A DNA stretch of 63,920 nucleotides, filler included, from Octopus bimaculoides (lineage: Eukaryota), in the NCBI RefSeq assembly GCF_001194135.2. It is 5 parts of 5 records of this genome, joined end to end, with 100 filler letters (N's around TTAATTAATTAA, not from the genome) between each part and the next. Parts side by side here need not be neighbours in the genome. Positions count along the whole stretch, not along the records: positions 22,211 to 41,498 come from NC_069010.1; 4 more parts are not named here. The stretch is one strand, 5' to 3'. Positions 26,660-38,217 of this stretch are shown here, piece after piece; positions within the stretch are counted from its first letter, which is position 1; every line of letters starts with the position of its first letter. The notes beneath the pieces were generated by a model. It saw only the letters and a program-made list of their open reading frames with translations. It searched no databases and was not told the origin of the DNA. The translations under genes were made by a program, and so were the position numbers.

Positions 26660-27920
26660 CTGTGTATTTTTGTCCACAGCACAGAATGCTGTATGTAACC
26701 AATCACATTGTTGAAGAAAAATATATAGATTTTGTATATCTTTGTTCTTTCTGCAAGGCATAATATAAATGTGTTATCAATTTATTTGATATCACACGAC
26801 AGCCTATTGTCATTATGGTTTATGATATATTCATTTATTCTTTACTTTTTTACTTGTTTCAATCATTTGAATGTAGCCATACTGGAGCACCACCTTTAAT
26901 CAAACAATTAACCTCAGGACTTATTCTTTGTAAGCCTGGTACTTATTCTATTGGTCTCTTTTGCTGAACTGCTAAGTTATAGGGATGTGAACACACCAAC
27001 ATCAGTTGTCAAGCGATGGTGGGTTGGTGGGACAAACACAGGCACACCATTGATGGTTGCTTTCTAGCGTAAAGGATGTCCACTTAGTGGTCATCCCTTC
27101 TCACATGTATGTAATATATATAAAGGGTTTCTTACAGTTTCCACTTACCAAATCCATTCACAAGGCTTTGGTCAGCCCACGGCTGTAGTGGAAGACACTT
27201 GTGCAAGGTACAATGCAGTGGGACTGAACTCGGATCCATGTGGTTGGGAAGCAAGCTTCTTACCACATAATCACACCTGTGCCTATATCTATCTCTGTCA
27301 TATATCTTTGTCCCCCCACCATCACTTAACAACCAATGTTGGTGTGTTTACGTCCCCGTAACTTAGCAGATCGGTAAAAGAGACCAATAGAATAAGTACT
27401 AGGCTTACAAAAAATAAGTTTTGGGGTTGATTTGTTTGACTAAAGGCAGTGCTGCAGCATGGCCACAGTCAAATGACTGAAACAAGTAAAAANNNNNNNN
27501 NNNNNNNNNNNNNNNNNNNNNNNNNNNNNNNNNNNNNNNNNNNNNNNNNNNNNNNNNNNNNNNNNNNNNNNNNNNNNNNNNNNNNNNNNNNNNNNNNNNN
27601 NNNNNNNNNNNNNNNNNNNNNNNNNNNNNNNNNNNNNNNNNNNNNNNNNNNNNNNNNNNNNNNNNNNNNNNNNNNNNNNNNNNNNNNNNNNNNNNNNNNN
27701 NNCCGTAACTTAGCAGATCGGTAAAAGAGACCAATAGAATAAGTACTAGGCTTACAAAAAATAAGTTTTGGGGTTGATTTGTTTGACTAAAGGCAGTGCT
27801 GCAGCATGGCCACAGTCAAATGACTGAAACAAGTAAAAAAATAAAAGATTATATATATATATGCTATAAGCTCGTATTGGAGGTCGCTTGTATTTTGAAG
27901 TCGATATTTAAGGGACTTAC

Positions 27921-28109
27921 CTAAGGGCACAGTACCAGTTGCTGCACTGTCTACAGGGGAGGGAGGACTGTTGGCAACTTCTGTGGTGGTGGCCACTAGA
28001 GTGTGCAGATGTCTACACGTCTGGCAACAGACTCTGGACTGTCTATAAGTGTCGTAGTAGATACAGTTTGAAGCCAGGCATTGGTCACTGCGGTCACCAA
28101 ACTCACAGT
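27921..28109 (-). CDS. Exon C of the Cys-rich repeat protein: third module plus S/T/P-rich stalk
   Basis: Acceptor ttttcttcttccag|AC TGT; donor TTA G|gtaagt; 189 nt phase 1-1; (D)CEFGDRSDQCLASNCIYYDTYRQSRVCCQTCRHLHTLVATTTEVANSPPSPVDSAATGTVPL. Confidence 0.87.
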
Positions 28110-29310
28110 CTGGAAGAAGAAAATAGAAAAGGATATAGTTAGAGAGAGAGGGGGGGAGAGTGTGGAGAGAGGGGATGAAGGAGAAGAGAGTGTAAACAGA
28201 CAAGAAGAGGATTTAGAGGGAGAGGAGAAAAGAAAGAGGGTGGAGAGCAGTGAAAAAGAGAGGGAGATCAAGTGAGAGGGAGAGGTGAAAGAAAGAGGGG
28301 AGAAAGAAAAGAGAGAGATGAAAGGGAGAAAGAAAGAGCATGGGAGAGGAAGAATACAGAAGAAAGGGAAGAGAGACTGAAAGGAGATACAGGGGGAGAG
28401 AGGGGGAGAGAGTGAGAGTAGAAAGAGTGAAGGAATGGACAGAGTGGGAAAGAGAGAGAAAATATGCAGATAGATAGATAGATAGATAGACAGAGAGATA
28501 GATGGATAGATAGGGAGACAGAGAGATAGATGGATAGATAGATAGATAGATAGATAGGTAGATAGATAGATAGACAGATAGATAGACAGGGAGATAGATG
28601 GATAGATAGATAGATAGATAGATACATTTCTTTTATTAGCCACACAGGGCTCAAGAAAGATGGGACAAATACAATGTAGAGCTTTTCTTTTTGGGAGGGG
28701 GAAGGAAAGAGAGAAAAAAAAGGGTGTGTCGATCAAAAGGGATCGTAGGAAGGGAAAAAGGGGGGAGTTCGATCAAAAGGGATCGAGAAGAAAAAAAAAA
28801 AAAAGCGATCAATAGGGATCGTGTATCACACAGTAATGTTCTCGTGTAAAAAGAGGGGAGGACAGTTTAGGTTTAGCCATGGAAAGAAAAGCCTACGGAA
28901 AAGACCACGGTAACCTTGGTCAATATTGTCATTGAAGAAACTATAACAGTAAGTGACTCTCTTTTGCCTTTTTGTTTTATTTTTTTAGACAGTCAGACAG
29001 ACAGACTGATAGATAGATAGATAGATAGATAGATGGATAGATAGACAGACAGATAGATAGATGGACAGACAGACAGACAGACAGACAGATTGATAGATGG
29101 ATGGATGGGCGGATAGATAGATAGACAGACATATAGACAGACAGATACATAGATCCATGGATAGATAATAGTGGTGGTGGTAGTAGTAGTAGAAGTAGTA
29201 GTAGTGGTGGTGGTAGTGGTGGTGGCAGTAGAAGTGATAGTATAGTGTGGTGGTGGATGTTGTAGTAGTGGTAGCAGTAGTTAATAGTAGTAGTAGTAGC
29301 GGTACCCTAC

Positions 29311-29427
29311 CAGGGTGGGTAGTGTCCCTGAGTTTTGAACACGTGTAGCAGCACTCCTTGTGTTGAGTATAACAGTCAAGTCTAGTAATATTGGAACAGC
29401 CATCTCGTCTGTCTCCACATGCACAGC
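29311..29427 (-). CDS. Internal exon B of the Cys-rich repeat protein
   Basis: Acceptor cattgttcttgcag|GC TGT; donor CCT G|gtaggg; 117 nt phase 1-1; (G)CACGDRRDGCSNITRLDCYTQHKECCYTCSKLRDTTHP(D). Confidence 0.88.
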
Positions 29428-29477
29428 CTGCAAGAACAATGAATAATAATGATGATAATAATAATGATGATGGTGAC

Positions 29478-29510
<33 letters not shown>

Positions 29511-29524
29511 CATAATCATAATGA

Positions 29525-29935
29525 AGGAAAAAAATGCTTTCTAATTGATGTATCAATACCAGCAGATGACAACGTTTCCCTAAAAGAAATGGAGAAACTT
29601 TCAAAATACAAAGACCTGGAAATAGAGGTAACTCGAATGTGGAATCTAAAAACAGAAACAATTCCTATCATAGTAGGTGCCTTAGGTATAATAAAAAAAT
29701 ATTCAGACAAATACATAACAAAAACACCAGGACTTACAAATATATATAACATACAGAAAATTGCACTACTGGGCACTGCACACATCCTACGCAAAACACT
29801 TTCAATACAGTAACCATAAGAGCATCACAGCAAACCACAGCACATACCCAAGGCACACAGCTGCGCTCGGTAGTGAAGTGAAAGCACATTATAAAAATAA
29901 AACTACTGAACAATANNNNNNNNNNNNNNNNNNNN
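29525..29935 (+). mobile_element. Dong/R4-type RLE non-LTR retrotransposon, 3' fragment 1
   Basis: KKCFLIDVSIPADDNVSLKEMEKLSKYKDLEIEVTRMWNLKTETIPIIVGALG..QKIALLGTAHILRKTLSIQ* = restriction-like endonuclease C-terminus (D-x-x-x-P..KExEKxxKY); preceded by (AAT)n. Confidence 0.85.
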
Positions 29936-31043
29936 NNNNNNNNNNNNNNNNNNNNNNNNNNNNNNNNNNNNNNNNNNNNNNNNNNNNNNNNNNNNNNNNN
30001 NNNNNNNNNNNNNNNNNNNNNNNNNNNNNNNNNNNNNNNNNNNNNNNNNNNNNNNNNNNNNNNNNNNNNNNNNNNNNNNNNNNNNNNNNNNNNNNNNNNN
30101 NNNNNNNNNNNNNNNNNNNNNNNNNNNNNNNNNNNNNNNNNNNNNNNNNNNNNNNNNNNNNNNNNNNNNNNNNNNNNNNNNNNNNNNNNNNNNNNNNNNN
30201 NNNNNNNNNNNNNNNNNNNNNNNNNNNNNNNNNNNNNNNNNNNNNNNNNNNNNNNNNNNNNNNNNNNNNNNNNNNNNNNNNNNNNNNNNNNNNNNNNNNN
30301 NNNNNNNNNNNNNNNNNNNNNNNNNNNNNNNNNNNNNNNNNNNNNNNNNNNNNNNNNNNNNNNNNNNNNNNNNNNNNNNNNNNNNNNNNNNNNNNNNNNN
30401 NNNNNNNNNNNNNNNNNNNNNNNNNNNNNNNNNNNNNNNNNNNNNNNNNNNNNNNNNNNNNNNNNNNNNNNNNNNNNNNNNNNNNNNNNNNNNNNNNNNN
30501 NNNNNNNNNNNNNNNNNNNNNNNNNNNNNNNNNNNNNNNNNNNNNNNNNNNNNNNNNNNNNNNNNNNNNNNNNNNNNNNNNNNNNNNNNNNNNNNNNNNN
30601 NNNNNNNNNNNNNNNNNNNNNNNNNNNNNNNNNNNNNNNNNNNNNNNNNNNNNNNNNNNNNNNNNNNNNNNNNNNNNNNNNNNNNNNNNNNNNNNNNNNN
30701 NNNNNNNNNNNNNNNNNNTAGTGCTAAGTAATATAACATTTTTAAAGTCTGACAAGTACTGCCCACATCCTTAGAGAAACCCTATCCATTTAAATGTCTG
30801 TGATGTATTGCATGAAGATATTCTGCTACTTCCCCTCCCCAAGCTTTCAGCCATACTGTAACATCTCGACCTCAGCAGAATATGAACTCAGAATGTAGTG
30901 GCAGGCAAAATACCCACAAGCATTTCGCCCGGCATGCTAACGATTCTGCCAGCTCACTGCTTTAATAATAATAATAATAATAATNNNNNNNNNNAAGCAC
31001 ATTATAAAAATAAAACTACTGAACAATAATAATAATAATAATA

Positions 31044-31454
31044 TACCAAAAACTGAGCAAGTATAGAGATCTTGAAATAGGAATTGGCAAAATGTGGAGC
31101 ATGAAGACTAAAACACTACCTGTTGTCATAGGTGCCCTGGGAATGACAGCAAAAGGGGCTGATTGCTACCTAACTCAGATACCAGGAAACCCCAAAATGG
31201 CTGGAGTTCAAAAGATAGTGCTCATGGGAACCGCCCATATCCTACGTAAAATACTGTCTATGTAATCTCAAATTTTAAAACAAACTCATAATTTTCGTAT
31301 GTTTTCTTAAACATTCTCTAGAACAATACTACGTACAAATCCAAATATATGGCACCCTAGGCATAACACCAACATGAACTTCTAACTTGTTGTCTCTTGA
31401 GGTCTCTGGGTGAAACTTGGAGTCAACTTGTACAAATACAAAGCAAAAGTCAAA

Positions 31455-31460
<6 letters not shown>
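31044..31460 (+). mobile_element. Dong/R4-type 3' fragment 2 (different subfamily)
   Basis: YQKLSKYRDLEIGIGKMWSMKTKTLPVVIGALGMTAKGADCYLTQIPGNPKMAGVQKIVLMGTAHILRKILSM*, 3' UTR, then (AAT)n; (AAT)n also upstream. Confidence 0.85.
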
Positions 31461-31513
<53 letters not shown>

Positions 31514-31599
31514 TAATAATAATAATAATAATGGTTTCAAATTTTGCCACAAGGGCAGCCATTTTGGGGAAGGGGATAAGTTGATTACATCAACCCAGA

Positions 31600-31713
31600 T
31601 GTTCTTGTTATTGTGGATGCACTTGGTATGATAAGAAAGCGATGTCAGAAACATCAAGATAATATCCCAGGAGAACCATGTCTCAGAGAAATCCAAAAGA
31701 TTGTACTGACAAG
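31600..31713 (+). mobile_element. Dong/R4-type 3' fragment 3 (runs into gap)
   Basis: VIVDALGMIRKRCQKHQDNIPGEPCLREIQKIVLT. Confidence 0.7.
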
Positions 31714-32260
31714 NNNNNNNNNNNNNNNNNNNNNNNNNNNNNNNNNNNNNNNNNNNNNNNNNNNNNNNNNNNNNNNNNNNNNNNNNNNNNNNNNNNNNNN
31801 NNNNNNNNNNNNNNNNNNNNNNNNNNNNNNNNNNNNNNNNNNNNNNNNNNNNNNNNNNNNNNNNNNNNNNNNNNNNNNNNNNNNNNNNNNNNNNNNNNNN
31901 NNNNNNNNNNNNNNNNNNNNNNNNNNNNNNNNNNNNNNNNNNNNNNNNNNNNNNNNNNNNNNNNNNNNNNNNNNNNNNNNNNNNNNNNNNNNNNNNNNNN
32001 NNNNNNNNNNNNNNNNNNNNNNNNNNNNNNNNNNNNNNNNNNNNNNNNNNNNNNNNNNNNNNNNNNNNNNNNNNNNNNNNNNNNNNNNNNNNNNNNNNNN
32101 NNNNNNNNNNNNNNNNNNNNNNNNNNNNNNNNNNNNNNNNNNNNNNNNNNNNNNNNNNNNNNNNNNNNNNNNNNNNNNNNNNNNNNNNNNNNNNNNNNNN
32201 NNNNNNNNNNNNNNNNNNNNNNNNNNNNNNNNNNNNNNNNNNNNNNNNNNNNNNNNNNNN

Positions 32261-32605
32261 GAAATGGAGAAACTTTCAAAATACAAAAACCTGGAAATAG
32301 AGGTAACTCGAATGTGGAATCTAAAAACAGAAACAATTTCTATCATAGTAGGTGCCTTAGGTATAATAAAAAAATATTCAGACAAATACATAATAAAAAC
32401 ACCAGGATTAACAAATATATATAACATACAGAAAATTGCACTACTGGGCACTGCACACATCCTACGCAAAACACTTTCAATACAGTAACCATAAGAGCAT
32501 CACAGCAAACCACAGCACATACCCAAGGCATACAGAGCTGCGCTCGGTAGTGAAGTGAAAGCACGTTATAAAAATAAAACTACTGAAAAATAATAATAAT
32601 AACAA
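32261..32605 (+). mobile_element. Dong/R4-type 3' fragment 4 (near-identical to fragment 1)
   Basis: EMEKLSKYKNLEIEVTRMWNLKTETISIIVGALG..LRKTLSIQ*, same 3' UTR, (TAA)n tail; several substitutions relative to 29590-29915. Confidence 0.85.
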
Positions 32606-32629
32606 TAATGATGATGATGATGATGATGA

Positions 32630-33306
32630 AATTGGTAAAAGAATGAATTGGTGAGTATGGATATGAAGGCACAAAATTATTGACAGTGAATTATTAGCAG
32701 TGAATGCCTGAAATTGGCACAACATGAATACAAAAGGCAACATGACAATGTGGCAAGAATGATCCATTGGGAGCTTTCTGGAAATTATGGCCTAGAAAGA
32801 TCAAAGACATGGTATGACAAAATCCCAGAAAGAGTTAGCTGAGAATGAGGATTGAAAAATCCTATGGGATGCAATGATCCAGTCTGACAATCTGATTAAA
32901 CATCGAAAACCTGACATTGTTGTAGTGAACAGAACAGAACAGAAAAAAAACAAAAAAAAATGGCTGATAATTGACATAGCATATCCTGGTGACAACGGAA
33001 GAAGTGAACGACAATGATGAATTGAAGTGAGGAATATGCAGGTTGTGGGCAATGAAGAGAGTGGATGTGATATCAATAGTGATTGGCATGCTTGGAAATA
33101 TCGGCACCCGACTACCGACATGGCTCAAAATGATTGGTACAGATGTAAAGATAGAATGCCTACAAGAACCACCATTGCTTGGAACTGCAATAGTCCTCCA
33201 CAGAGTTCTTGAAGCATGACCAGTAAACAAGTGTCACCTTAGTCTGCTGGCTGTAGACAGCTGACACTTTCCATCATACACAGCAAAATAAAGCTGAGAT
33301 TTTTCC

Positions 33307-33350
<44 letters not shown>
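32630..33350 (+). mobile_element. Dong/R4-type fragment 5, longer and degenerate
   Basis: ISECLKLAQHEYKRQHDNVARMIHWELSGNYGLERSKTWYDKIPE/ENED*KILWDAMIQSDNLIKHRKPDIVVVNRTE..LIIDIAYPGD: zinc-knuckle end plus PD..D RLE motif; ends in (AAT)n. Confidence 0.85.
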
Positions 33351-33351
<1 letters not shown>

Positions 33352-33823
33352 TTTTAAATAATAGTAGTAGTAATAATAATCATCATCATCATTACCATCA
33401 TCGTTTAACGTCTGCTTTCCATGCTAGCATGGGTTGGACGATTTGACTGAGGACTGGTGAAACCCGATGGCTACACCAGGCTCCAATCTGATTTAGTAGA
33501 GTTTCTACAGCTGGATGTAGAAATGATAATAATAATAATAATAATAAAAATAATAATGGTTTCAAATTTTGGCACAAAGCCATCAATTTTGGAGGAGAGG
33601 TTAAGTCAACTACATTGACCTCAGTGTTTTACTGGTACTTATCTCATCAACCCCAAAAGGATGCAAGGTGAAGTTGACTGTGGTGGAATTTGAACTCAGA
33701 ATGTAAAAATGCCACTGAGCATTTCATCCGATGCAGTAATGACTCTGTCAGCTCAAAAAATAATAAGAAACCAAAAGGAAAAAAAAAAAAGAAAAACAAT
33801 GATTAGAATGAAGTTCTAAATAC

Positions 33824-33946
33824 CAGGTATATTTGTTTTGCAGTGTCTCTTACAAGTCTCACAGCAAAGTTTTGTAATATCCGGAGTATAACAAGCGTAA
33901 GAACTGAAGTTTCTGCATTGGGAGTGACGATCGTCAAATTTGCAAC
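33824..33946 (-). CDS. Internal exon A of a Cys-rich repeat protein (six-Cys PLAC-like module)
   Basis: Acceptor ttatattttcag|GT TGC; donor CCT G|gtattt; 123 nt phase 1-1; (G)CKFDDRHSQCRNFSSYACYTPDITKLCCETCKRHCKTNIP(G). Confidence 0.88.
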
Positions 33947-34948
33947 CTGAAAATATAAAACATAGGGATTTAAATGAAATAATTAACACAGTAGAAGGCA
34001 CATGGCTCAGTGGTTAGAGTGCTGGGCTCACAATCATGAGGTAGTGAGCTCGATTCTCACACTGGGCTATGTGTTGTGTTCTTGAGTAAGACACTTTATT
34101 TCGTGTTGCTTCAGTTCACTCAGATATAGAAATGATTTGTGACATCACTGGTACCAAGCTGTATCATGGCCTTTACCTTTCCCCAGGATAACATTAGTGG
34201 CATGGAGAGGGGAAACCGGTATGCATGGGCGACTGCTGGTCATCCATGAGAATAACCTTGCCCAGACTTGTGCCTTGGAGGGGAACTTCCTAGGTGTAAT
34301 CCCATGGTCATTCATGACTGATGGGACCTTTACCATTTTATTTTTAGAGGTATACAGTGAGATTTTATTCTGGCTGGTTCTATTCATAAAAAAGTTTTCA
34401 GTTAAATCTCAGTGTATGGTACTTGAGCAAATTTATTTAACTATAGCCTTTTGTGTGTGTTTTATATATATATAAAGTCTGTCATACCGGCCATGATGAA
34501 ATACCACAAGGTATAGAAAATACGTATTCGCCTTTATATATTTAATCCTTTATATTGAACACTCAATATTTCATCTATTCAATAAGACATATTCCATATA
34601 TTCAATAAGACATTCAATACTTTATTTCATTGTACCATCCATTTTTATATTATATATTATATATTCCATATTCTATATCCCACATTAATTTTACAAGAAT
34701 ATAAATAAAACATAAAAAAACAGACAGAGTTGGAACTCTTTTAAACAAAATAATATATATATATATATATATATACATACAGGGTGTCCACAAAGTCTGG
34801 GTACATGGGNNNNNNNNNNNNNNNNNNNNNNNNNNNNNNNNNNNNNNNNNNNNNNNNNNNNNNNNNNNNNNNNNNNNNNNNNNNNNNNNNNNNNNNNNNN
34901 NNNNNNNNNNNNNNNNNNNNNNNNNNNNNNNNNNNNNNNNNNNNNNNN

Positions 34949-34986
<38 letters not shown>

Positions 34987-37901
34987 AGTCGCAGTATATA
35001 GACTCAAATAATCTGGCAGTACTCAGTAAAAAAAGCTCCTTAATGTATCATTCTACAAACCATATAGAATGTATAGCAATATACAAGAGAAAAGCCCATC
35101 AATGGGTATCGACCATCAGACACAATTTTATAGGGAAAAATCAATCGTATCACTGAAGATGCATCTGGAAATCAGTTAATATCTGTACAGGTAAATATAA
35201 AAATATAAACAAAAGAGAATGGATTGAACGACACATTGCATGATGCTACAATCATTTCATCACCTGACAACGCAACTGAAATTCTGCATTATTTTGAACA
35301 AATTTTTTTTTCTTTGCATTTTGCATTAATGCAGACATGTAAGTAATTTATTTATTATTAAATATGATAATATAAGTTATTTGCATGTTTTGGAGTTATG
35401 AAACAATTTCTTGTGTTATTAAGGATTTTTTTTATTGTTAAATAAAAGTTCATCAAAATGTTTCTCTGTCATGTATGACTTTATATATATATATATATAT
35501 TCTTTTACTTGTTTCAGTCATTTGGCTGTGGCCATGCTGAAGCACCACCTTTAGTCGAACAAATTGTCCCCAGGGCTTAGTCTTTGTAAGCCTAGTATTT
35601 ATTCTATTGTCTCTTTTGCTGAACTGCTAAGTTACAGAGACATAAACACACCAGCATCAGTTGTCAAGCGATGGTGGGGGGGACAAACACAGACATGGTG
35701 GGGGGACAGACACTTGCCCAAGGTGCCATGCAGTGGGACTGAACCTGGAACCATGTGGTTGGTAAGCAAGCTACTTACCCCACAGCCACTCCTGCGCCTA
35801 TATATATATATATNNNNNNNNNNTGGTTGGTAAGCAAGCTACTTACCCCACAGCCACTCCTGCGCCTATATATATATATATTCTTTTATTCTTTTGCTTG
35901 TTTCAGTCATTTGACTGCGGCCATGCTGGCATTATGTTTCTACATATGTTTCTACATAAGGAATACTTAAAATGCCATTTATACATTTAATGTACCCCTG
36001 AAACAGCTGTAAATGATATCTTTTACCCGAATTTATATATTTTTACCAAATTTATTTACCCCTGAATTTTAAAATTTTGAACTCTCATCCGACAATTCAT
36101 ATAAACACCAAATTCTTGATCAATTGGAACTGTTCCTTTTAGAGGCCCTTACTTTGGATTTTTGTCTCTTTATTTGTCCCTCCTCCATTCAGTTCCTGAA
36201 CTCAACATACATGGTGCATAGTTTTTACATATAACTTGTGCATGTAATTTTATTCACTTATTTATTTAAATTTATACACTTAATTATATAAATTTATATT
36301 ATATTCATTTGTTGTGTGCTTTAAATTATGCTTTGGAATTTGTATTGATTGCCTGGATTGCCTGAATGTGTTCCTTCTATAATTCCTCTTACTCTTCATT
36401 TTAGCTCGCAATGAACACTTCCTAATACAGCCCATATATTGTGAAGTATACTTAAAAGCATATTTTATAAGAAGATTTAACTTCATATATTTATATACAT
36501 ACATACATACACACACACATNNNNNNNNNNNNNNNNNNNNNNNNNNNNNNNNNNNNNNNNNNNNNNNNNNNNNNNNNNNNNNNNNNNNNNNNNNNNNNNN
36601 NNNNNNNNNNNNNNNNNNNNNNNNNNNNNNNNNNNNNNNNNNNNNNNNNNNNNNNNNNNNNNNNNNNNNNNNNNNNNNNNNNNNNNNNNNNNNNNNNNNN
36701 NNNNNNNNNNNNNNNNNNNNNNNNNNNNNNNNNNNNNNNNNNNNNNNNNNNNNNNNNNNNNNNNNNNNNNNNNNNNNNNNNNNNNNNNNNNNNNNNNNNN
36801 NNNNNNNNNNNNNNNNNNNNNNNNNNNNNNNNNNNNNNNNNNNNNNNNNNNNNNNNNNNNNNNNNNNNNNNNNNNNNNNNNNNNNNNNNNNNNNNNNNNN
36901 NNNNNNNNNNNNNNNNNNNNNNNNNNNNNNNNNNNNNNNNNNNNNNNNNNNNNNNNNNNNNNNNNNNNNNNNNNNNNNNNNNNNNNNNNNNNNNNNNNNN
37001 NNNNNNNNNNNNNNNNNNNNNNNNNNNNNNNNNNNNNNNNNNNNNNNNNNNNNNNNNNNNNNNNNNNNNNNNNNNNNNNNNNNNNNNNNNNNNNNNNNNN
37101 NNNNNNNNNNNNNNNNNNNNNNNNNNNNNNNNNNNNNNNNNNNNNNNNNNNNNNNNNNNNNNNNNNNNNNNNNNNNNNNNNNNNNNNNNNNNNNNNNNNN
37201 NNNNNNNNNNNNNNNNNNNNNNNNNNNNNNNNNNNNNNNNNNNNNNNNATATATATATATATATATATATACACATACATATATATCAGTTCAGTTTTGG
37301 TATTAAGCATATAGTTCACTTTCAAAAACCCATCTATGGGTATCAGATATCAAACACAATTTTATAGGGAAAAATCAATCGTATCACTGAAGATACATCT
37401 GGAAATATCTGTAGAAGTATATATAAAAATATAAGCAAAAGAGAATGGATTGAATGATGCTAAAATCACTTCATCACCACTTTACCAGAAGATCATTTCC
37501 AAAATATTATTATATATATTTCTTTATAGCCCACAGGGGCCTAAACATAGAGGGGGACAAACAAGGACAGAGAAAGGGATTAAGTTGATTACATCGATCT
37601 CAGAGGTTGACTGCCTTTCATTCTTTCCTGGTCGATTAGATAAATACTGGTATTTATTTAATATGGATGAATTGAAGAATAAAAGAATAACAGAATAATA
37701 GAATAGTGCATGAAATTAATCCTCATGTCAGTATTATTTCAATAGGAAGTGTTGATTCTTGAGGTATATGTACAAATGATTTGCTAAATTAAAAATGTGG
37801 TTTAATTCAGCAAAAGTGTCAGGTAATGCAGTCCATATATTGTTAAGTATACTTAAAAACATACTTTATAAAAAAATTTAACTTCAGTAGCATCCACCCT
37901 T

Positions 37902-38217
37902 GTGAAGGCGCAATGGCCCAGTGGTTAGGGCAGCGGACTCGGGGTCGGAAGATTGCAGTTTCAATTCCTAGACCGGGTGTTGTGAGTGTTTATTGAGCAA
38001 AAACACCTAAGCTCCACCAGGATCCAGCAGGGGGTAGTGGCGACCCCTGTTGTACTCTTTCGCCCCAACTTTCTCTCACTCTTTCTTCCTGTTTCTTGAG
38101 TAACGCTGCGATGGACTGGCATCCCGTCCAGCTGGGGGGAAACACATACGCCATAGAAACCGGGAAACCGGGCCCAACGAGCCTGGCTAGGCTTTGAAAG
38201 GGCGAAAAGAAAAGAAA
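37902..38217 (+). mobile_element. Family-3 SINE with a different 3' tail
   Basis: Same head and ~190-bp body as 8531-8901; 11-bp TSD CATCCACCCTT at 37891-37901 and 38218-38228. Confidence 0.85.

Follow-up and report, generated by a model that had tools for sequence, protein, structure and literature searches.

Two small domains with six cysteines are the nearest described counterparts of the sequences considered here. The PLAC domain, which occurs in ADAMTS, ADAMTSL, papilin and PACE4 proteins and whose closest instance for present purposes is that of MIG-17 from C. elegans, is approximately 35–40 residues long, has six cysteines ending in CC-x-[ST]-C, and is normally found singly, on a secreted protein. 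The ShKT domain, and with it the cysteine-rich domain that CRISPs carry, is small and helical and starts with C-x-[aromatic]-x-D, the canonical ShKT ending being C-x3-C-x2-C; metalloproteases with ShKT domains include MMP23 and the astacins of cnidarians and nematodes. A module with likenesses to both was identified in a window of 63,920 nucleotides from Octopus bimaculoides (assembly GCF_001194135.2), the window being the whole stretch of DNA analysed, i.e., five genomic parts joined end to end. The piece under study (22211–41498, ~19 kb, from NC_069010.1) was 36% G+C and 20% N, and contained three exons on the minus strand, A, B and C, each encoding one copy of the module. These were very probably genuine coding exons of a family of such modules. 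It is also reasonably likely that they make up the final three exons for the ectodomain in an unannotated cephalopod gene belonging to a family of type I membrane-anchored, ADAMTS-like (MIG-17-like) M12B proteins of molluscs and annelids that lack thrombospondin repeats (TSRs).

Exon A (33946–33824, 123 nt) was delimited by the acceptor ttttatattttcag/GT and the donor CCTG/gtattt, where the slash marks the exon border; exon B (29427–29311, 117 nt) by ttgttcttgcag/GC and CCTG/gtaggg; and exon C (28109–27921, 189 nt) by ttcttcttccag/AC and CTTAG/gtaagt. All six splice sites were canonical (AG/GT) with good polypyrimidine tracts, every exon length was divisible by three, and every border fell after the first base of a codon, so that each exon was of symmetric phase 1-1. 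Joining the exons (33824>29427 and 29311>28109) created the junction codons GGC (Gly) and GAC (Asp) and a spliced peptide of 143 amino acids (aa). An earlier inspection of the DNA, hereafter the sequence-only reading, had proposed this same gene model, which proved exact to the base. It had also pointed to two N-glycosylation sequons, and these were present, NFS in exon A and NIT in exon B; a sequon at the corresponding spot was found in 17 of 395 family modules and so was not conserved.

Exons A and B encoded regular modules, GCKFDDRHSQCRNFSSYACYTPDITKLCCETCKRHCKTNIP and GCACGDRRDGCSNITRLDCYTQHKECCYTCSKLRDTTHP, with the patterns C-x8-C-x7-C-x8-CC-x-T-C (spacing 8/7/8) and C-x8-C-x7-C-x6-CC-x-T-C (8/7/6), respectively. 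Exon C encoded a terminal-type module, DCEFGDRSDQCLASNCIYYDTYRQSRVCCQTC, with the pattern C-x8-C-x4-C-x11-CC-x-T-C (8/4/11), followed by a stalk rich in Thr, Ser and Pro (RHLHTLVATTTEVANSPPSPVDSAATGTVPL); the stalk segment TTTEVANSPPSPVDSAATGTVPL lay between the module and the consensus donor TAG/gtaagt, where the exon ended in phase 1. Identity among the three modules was approximately 40%, and all 18 canonical cysteines were kept, along with the G-D-R motif, in which module A had D in place of G. Modules A and B each possessed a seventh cysteine. In module A it lay four residues after the sixth cysteine (33838–33826, ...CKRHC), and in module B (29421–29419, C-A-C) it took the place of the usual Tyr or Phe; in the spliced peptide the two stood 8 residues apart, and a disulfide between them, linking the modules, is possible. 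More than six cysteines inside the span from first to sixth, where the extra cysteine of module B was located, occurred in a single case among 395 foreign modules. A scan of the piece in six frames for modules ending CC-x-[TS]-C or CC-x2-C found none beyond exons A, B and C.

The resemblance of these exons to the module family was not due to chance. A hidden Markov model (HMM) was built from 96 foreign modules, leaving out the piece's own sequences, and it scored 35.1 bits on exon A, 30.9 on exon B and 30.7 on exon C, against 3.9 bits for the next-best open reading frame (ORF) of the piece and 9.7 bits for the best ORF across 30 shuffles. Additionally, tblastn with 102 homologues placed approximately 254 high-scoring segment pairs on exon A and 234 on exon B.

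Those homologues were obtained by an exhaustive HMMER (phmmer) search of the 143-aa peptide against 1.84 billion protein cluster representatives, which returned 102 proteins at E ≤ 1e-3; of these, 32 reached E ≤ 1e-10 and 4 reached E ≤ 1e-30. The module was thus found in at least 102 protein clusters, with the consensus C-E-Y-G-D-K-x3-C-x7-C-Y-x6-8-CC-x-T-C (KPGCEYGDKSSWCSSISPSDCYNEENERDCCETCAKLKT). Among the matches carrying a source name, on which the taxonomic range rests, were bivalves (Mactra, Mya, Solemya, Mytilus, Sinanodonta, Crassostrea, Dreissena and Tegillarca), gastropods (Patella and Nucella), a chiton (Liolophura), Octopus vulgaris and annelids (Helobdella and Paralvinella). The spacings of modules A and B were common in the family, and that of module C was a terminal variant, which in homologues constituted the last module ahead of a Thr/Pro-rich stalk. 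Just before the final cysteine, 273 of 395 family modules had T and 66 had S. Family proteins carried their modules in tandem arrays of 2–18, a number that can vary because the exons are of symmetric phase 1.

The named members were labelled 'hypothetical' or 'uncharacterized' or had been named automatically, and the automatic labels were inconsistent ('ShKT', 'TNFR-Cys', 'notch-like', 'ADAMTS 7-like', 'hypothetical'). No paper describing the module was found in the literature. A word-indexed search of 5.8 billion proteins found none that shared three 5-residue words with the 143-aa peptide; for queries as short or divergent as this peptide and an alignment of 99 modules, such a null shows only that there is no near-identical annotated protein. 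It agrees with the remark of the sequence-only reading that the exons are not shown as a gene. Exons A–C are, in sum, unannotated and absent from the protein index searched, while the family to which they belong is already in databases, where it is uncharacterised.

The architecture of the homologues connected the module with metalloproteases. Among 29 module-bearing homologues scanned with Pfam, there were 21 in which the repeats were preceded by ADAMTS_CR_2 and/or Reprolysin-type domains, and none had a thrombospondin repeat (TSP1, PF00090 or PF19030). The sequence-only reading had likened the modules to repeats that end molluscan ADAM/ADAMTS-like proteins at the C-terminus, and the 102 matches and these domain counts bore this out; a characterised ADAMTS or papilin orthologue, which it had named as the finding that would remove the novelty, did not appear, all homologues being uncharacterised. 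Many homologues continued past the modules into a stalk, a transmembrane (TM) helix and a cytoplasmic tail. Ten homologues were chosen for combining few modules with a stalk and TM helix, the majority having a terminal-type module, and Pfam detected ADAMTS_CR_2 and/or Reprolysin in all 10.

The closest match in whole architecture was one such protein, from Mytilus californianus (P0011; LOC127717627, XP_052079309.1), which aligned to residues 1–139 of the octopus peptide at 47% identity. Module by module, identity to the octopus was 34–57% for P0011 and its relatives from bivalves, a chiton, gastropods and annelids, which are annotated 'Peptidase M12B domain-containing', 'ADAMTS 6/7/16-like' or 'hypothetical'. 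The Mytilus gene (JAKFGE010000010.1: 13046983–13098074) had four module exons, i.e., one for a variant module, two for regular modules and one for the terminal module with its stalk, each encoding one module and all of phase 1, with the TM exon after them; octopus exons A–C reproduced the sequence of regular, regular, and terminal module with stalk. The terminal module and stalk of exon C also compared closely with those of P0001, P0038, P0050 and P0056. In P0011, the stalk exon ended ...ELP/G, two residues ahead of the TM exon, and octopus exon C ended ...VPL/G; given this correspondence, the next downstream exon in the octopus is predicted to encode a TM helix. That the layout is shared across molluscan classes provides strong support for exons A–C being functional parts of such a gene. 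The octopus differed from P0011 in that only the last three ectodomain exons were visible in the piece, and in the seventh cysteine of modules A and B. Separately, the zinc site of P0011 read HELAHSLRAVH, with Arg for Gly relative to the canonical HExxHxxGxxH, and its Pfam matches to Reprolysin were only weak; some members of the family may be inactive pseudoproteases.

On the reading preferred here, the N-terminal part of the octopus protein would comprise a signal peptide, prodomain, M12B catalytic domain, ADAMTS_CR_2 and a four-cysteine variant module, and its C-terminal part modules A and B, the terminal module C, a Thr/Pro stalk carrying O-glycans, and then a TM helix and cytoplasmic tail. 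The protease exons would then lie upstream, beyond 41498 or in gaps, and the TM exon downstream, below 22211 or in a gap. When the piece was searched by tblastn with the 102 and then with 163 family proteins, no exons beyond A, B and C were found, and the sequence-only reading had likewise noted that no protease exon was visible. Weak matches at 41113–41292 and 38841–38912 were considered as upstream exons and rejected, being either in copies that resembled a short interspersed element (SINE) or unsupported. Kyte-Doolittle scans of 22211–27920 at two thresholds produced no credible TM exon, approximately 750 nt of that interval being N; hydrophobic stretches there were rejected as derived from SINE-like repeats or microsatellites.

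Several facts weigh against a protease-bearing, membrane-anchored gene. The searches of 22211–41498, of which 20% is N, turned up no exon for a protease, ADAMTS_CR_2, a variant module or a TM helix. The gene is known here from genomic sequence, and no annotated protein contains exons A–C, which could also mean that it goes unexpressed. Furthermore, two architectures without a protease exist within the family: a membrane protein with 17 modules (P0001 and P0002, from Mactra/Mya), and an apparently secreted protein with 3–5 modules and no TM segment seen (P0095, P0037 and P0041), the secreted type having a low-complexity N-terminus. The only cephalopod homologue identified, O. vulgaris CAI9731705.1 (P0095; GCA_951406725.2), belongs to the latter; it is 415 aa long with neither protease domain nor TM segment, and so is probably secreted.

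Exons A–C might accordingly belong to a member without a protease, either a module-rich type I membrane protein or a secreted protein, serving in adhesion, matrix-binding or as a decoy. This was considered improbable, if by no means negligible. P0001 and P0002 were the top matches to the octopus peptide (E = 1.5e-61 and 3.5e-41) and share the terminal module, stalk and TM segment; however, they were not closer in identity (41% and 38%), and their scores were the sum of nine matched stretches across 17 modules. A gene with 17 modules, one per exon, should also display modules in the 7.5 kb between exon A and the upstream end of the piece, where none was found. Proteins of the P0095 type have a different last module and no stalk. 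The number and order of the octopus modules fitted instead the protease-linked type of P0011, and the ten proteins of that kind scanned all carry ADAMTS_CR_2 and/or Reprolysin as noted above. The absence of protease exons, while consistent with a protease-less gene, was not telling, since the gene of the O. vulgaris paralogue spans approximately 132 kb for its 415 aa and exons are expected to be missing from a gap-rich piece of 19 kb. A protease-bearing, membrane-anchored gene was therefore judged the rather likely type.

The same observations could be explained if exons A–C were a dead or orphaned remnant, i.e., a pseudogene fragment or a relic of exon shuffling, outside any expressed gene. 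In keeping with this, no annotated protein had even three 5-mers of the peptide, searches of 19 kb turned up no flanking exons, and the locus is dense in repeats and microsatellites. Against it, three open frames, 18 canonical cysteines, six canonical splice sites and all phases are intact, and modules only ~40% identical to each other represent old copies that are nevertheless still whole. Moreover, cephalopod genes of this family can exceed 100 kb, and the proportion of N in the piece could alone explain the missing annotation. A remnant was thus held to be quite unlikely, and the preferred reading remained that of an intact gene of the P0011 type.

The affinity of the module itself was examined through cysteine patterns, Pfam profiles and predicted structure. 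Six cysteines and the CC-x-[ST]-C ending, as in PLAC, were present in all three octopus modules. In both the module family and MIG-17, the domain is C-terminal to M12B and an ADAMTS-type cysteine-rich region without thrombospondin repeats, and one oyster relative bears the UniProt name 'ADAM family mig-17'. Relative to PLAC, the start C-x-[YF]-G-D-[RK] and the C-Y after the third cysteine are specific to the module family, whose modules occur in tandem arrays of 2–18 that are often followed by a TM helix. Pfam PLAC (PF08686, gathering threshold 26.4 bits) gave no match at E ≤ 10 to the octopus modules or the spliced peptide. It matched 5 of 99 family modules faintly, at best with E = 0.0035 and always below threshold, and reached threshold on neither the 17-module proteins nor the family consensus, its best value among multi-module proteins being E = 0.082 (P0020). 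ShK (PF01549, cut-off 20.9 bits) matched module A only, at E = 0.35–0.43 (11.6–11.9 bits), and among family modules there were faint sub-threshold matches to ShK in 2/99 and to Crisp (PF08562) in 7/99. Neither of the two profiles that the sequence-only reading had suggested as a check therefore reached threshold. Six tandem copies of the artificial consensus scored 55.8 bits on PF11424, the N-terminal domain of DUF3195, and one copy 18.7; this was rejected because real multi-module proteins had no match, and was probably an artefact of the cysteine pattern.

An AlphaFold2 (AF2) model of the 143-aa peptide, based on a 40-sequence alignment, was confident and had short helices (mean predicted local distance difference test, pLDDT, 89.9; predicted template modelling score 0.73). 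All five of its Foldseek matches in the PDB were of the ShKT fold, namely cysteine-rich domains from two CRISPs of snake venom, pseudecin and natrin, together with a minimal ShK homologue, with a root-mean-square deviation of 2.3–2.7 Å over 31–35 columns; these were weak (E = 5.6–9.7, probability 0.12–0.30). Searches of PDB sequences gave nothing beyond the CRISP-2 cysteine-rich domain, the only match by profile (E = 1.7), and a spider-toxin-like peptide (AMS3; E = 0.52). For a model of a single module (pLDDT 78), Foldseek returned one meaningless match and no fold match. The structure prediction that the sequence-only reading had proposed thus yielded a helical model with ShKT-type neighbours, none of them significant. 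Its description of the module as PLAC-like rather than ShKT was upheld by the cysteine spacing, but not by the Pfam score for PLAC, which was sub-threshold, nor by the weak fold and PDB matches, all of ShKT type. The module was therefore assigned to neither Pfam PLAC nor ShK; it resembles a disulfide knot of PLAC/ShKT type.

The ShKT-type matches raise the question of whether these modules modulate ion channels, as do the ShKT domain of the membrane-bound MMP23 and the CRISP cysteine-rich domain, in which case the protein or its shed modules, perhaps as part of saliva or venom, would target channels for potassium or calcium. Beyond the structural matches, which included nothing in the PDB but CRISP cysteine-rich domains and an ShK homologue by fold and CRISP-2 by profile, this reading draws on the ShK score of module A and its extra C-terminal cysteine, which is typical of ShKT, and on the UniProt label of the O. 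vulgaris paralogue ('ShKT domain-containing'). M12B reprolysins have also been reported from octopod posterior salivary glands (PMC7656900). The matches were nonetheless far from significance, the canonical ShKT ending C-x3-C-x2-C is absent from the family, which has CC-x-T-C instead, and the single module found no fold match; the membrane anchorage expected for the protein, its stalk and the tandem arrangement are a better fit to a structural or ancillary role. A channel modulator was regarded as very unlikely.

If the module and ShKT do have a fold in common, then with CC-x-T-C in place of C-x3-C-x2-C the partner of the first cysteine must have moved. The module could represent a distinct, unnamed domain family of molluscs and annelids, with a ShKT-type fold rewired to the PLAC-type ending; in addition, the octopus gene would have a lineage-specific extra pair of cysteines that staples A to B by an inter-module disulfide. 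This was viewed as a doubtful proposition. If true, such rewiring would link two domain families that are now treated as unrelated.

With regard to function in a protein of the P0011 type, each module would be a small helical domain with three disulfides, and together the modules would most likely form a stiff, glycosylated, disulfide-locked spacer arm between the M12B catalytic head and the membrane. This arm would bind matrix or substrate. By analogy with MIG-17's PLAC domain, it might also assist in activation of the pro-enzyme; the C-terminal PLAC of MIG-17, an ADAMTS without TSRs, is needed for autocatalytic activation, according to a passage of PMC6215420 that cites Ihara & Nishiwaki 2007. 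The symmetric phase-1 exons would permit individual modules to be skipped in frame.

Assembly gaps affected the introns and not the exons. The three flagged gaps (N runs at 29916–30718, 30985–30994 and 31714–32260) were all within the intron between A and B (29428–33823, minus strand), which measured 4396 nt as scaffolded and, besides the gaps, contained (AAT)n tracts and plus-strand remnants of retroelement-like ORFs; both its length and its makeup are uncertain. Neither modules nor protease sequences were matched within it. The intron between B and C (28110–29310, minus strand) was 1201 nt long, without N, and rich in (AGAT)n, (GATA)n and (AGAC)n microsatellites. None of the three exons was in contact with an N run, so no reading frame crossed a gap. 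The A>B junction did span unresolved sequence; the putative adjacency of A and B was favoured by their shared strand and right order, by compatible phases, and by the succession of regular, regular and terminal modules seen in homologues.

Two segments flanking the gaps, 29586–29915 (330 nt, ending exactly at the first gap) and 32261–32592 (332 nt, beginning directly after the third), aligned end-to-end at ~97.5% identity. They were either two copies of a retroelement or transposon tail that broke the assembly, or overlapping contig ends that had not been merged; in the latter case the A–B intron would be approximately 1.7 kb and 30719–31713 would be misplaced. An extra module exon hidden in a gap is possible and not required, since as many modules are already visible as the best-matching architecture has.

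The repeats of the locus were also noted. The retroelement-like ORF remnants, all on the plus strand and so antisense to the gene, were located at 29391–29813, 31092–31265, 32261–32488 and 32714–33230, and carried motifs such as ...IPIIVGALGIIKK...LLGTAHILRK...; a Pfam scan of two of these ORFs from the A–B intron produced no match. A short interspersed repeat was present in many copies in the piece (27405–27490, 27787–27880, 41113–41290 and others), containing ...gtttcagtcatttgactgtggccatgctg... with the translation GGAPAWPQNLFFVS, and resembles the abundant octopus SINE. It accounted for long spurious ORFs beside exon C and for spurious upstream tblastn matches. The microsatellites of the B–C intron, long (AGAT)n and (GATA)n/(AGAC)n tracts at 28468–28624 and 28987–29171, together with an (AAT)27 tract (29442–29522) 15 nt upstream of the acceptor of exon B, were of note as microsatellites gave rise to long 'ORFs' of Ser, Leu, Tyr and Ile in the ORF list. 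An Rfam search of the piece found nothing.

The result is a solid gain in annotation, which neither overturns current knowledge nor opens up biology of a new kind. Cephalopod annotation is supplied with a gene that it lacked, or with the 3' part of one, and an extracellular module that is widespread in molluscs and annelids, and for which Pfam has no model, is now documented. To all appearances the family is a class of ADAMTS/MIG-17-like proteases, tethered to the membrane and TSR-less, with tandem PLAC/ShKT-like modules. With a curated module profile, annotation of the matrisome and of venom glands among lophotrochozoans would be better, and such a profile would permit the kinship of PLAC and ShKT to be tested.

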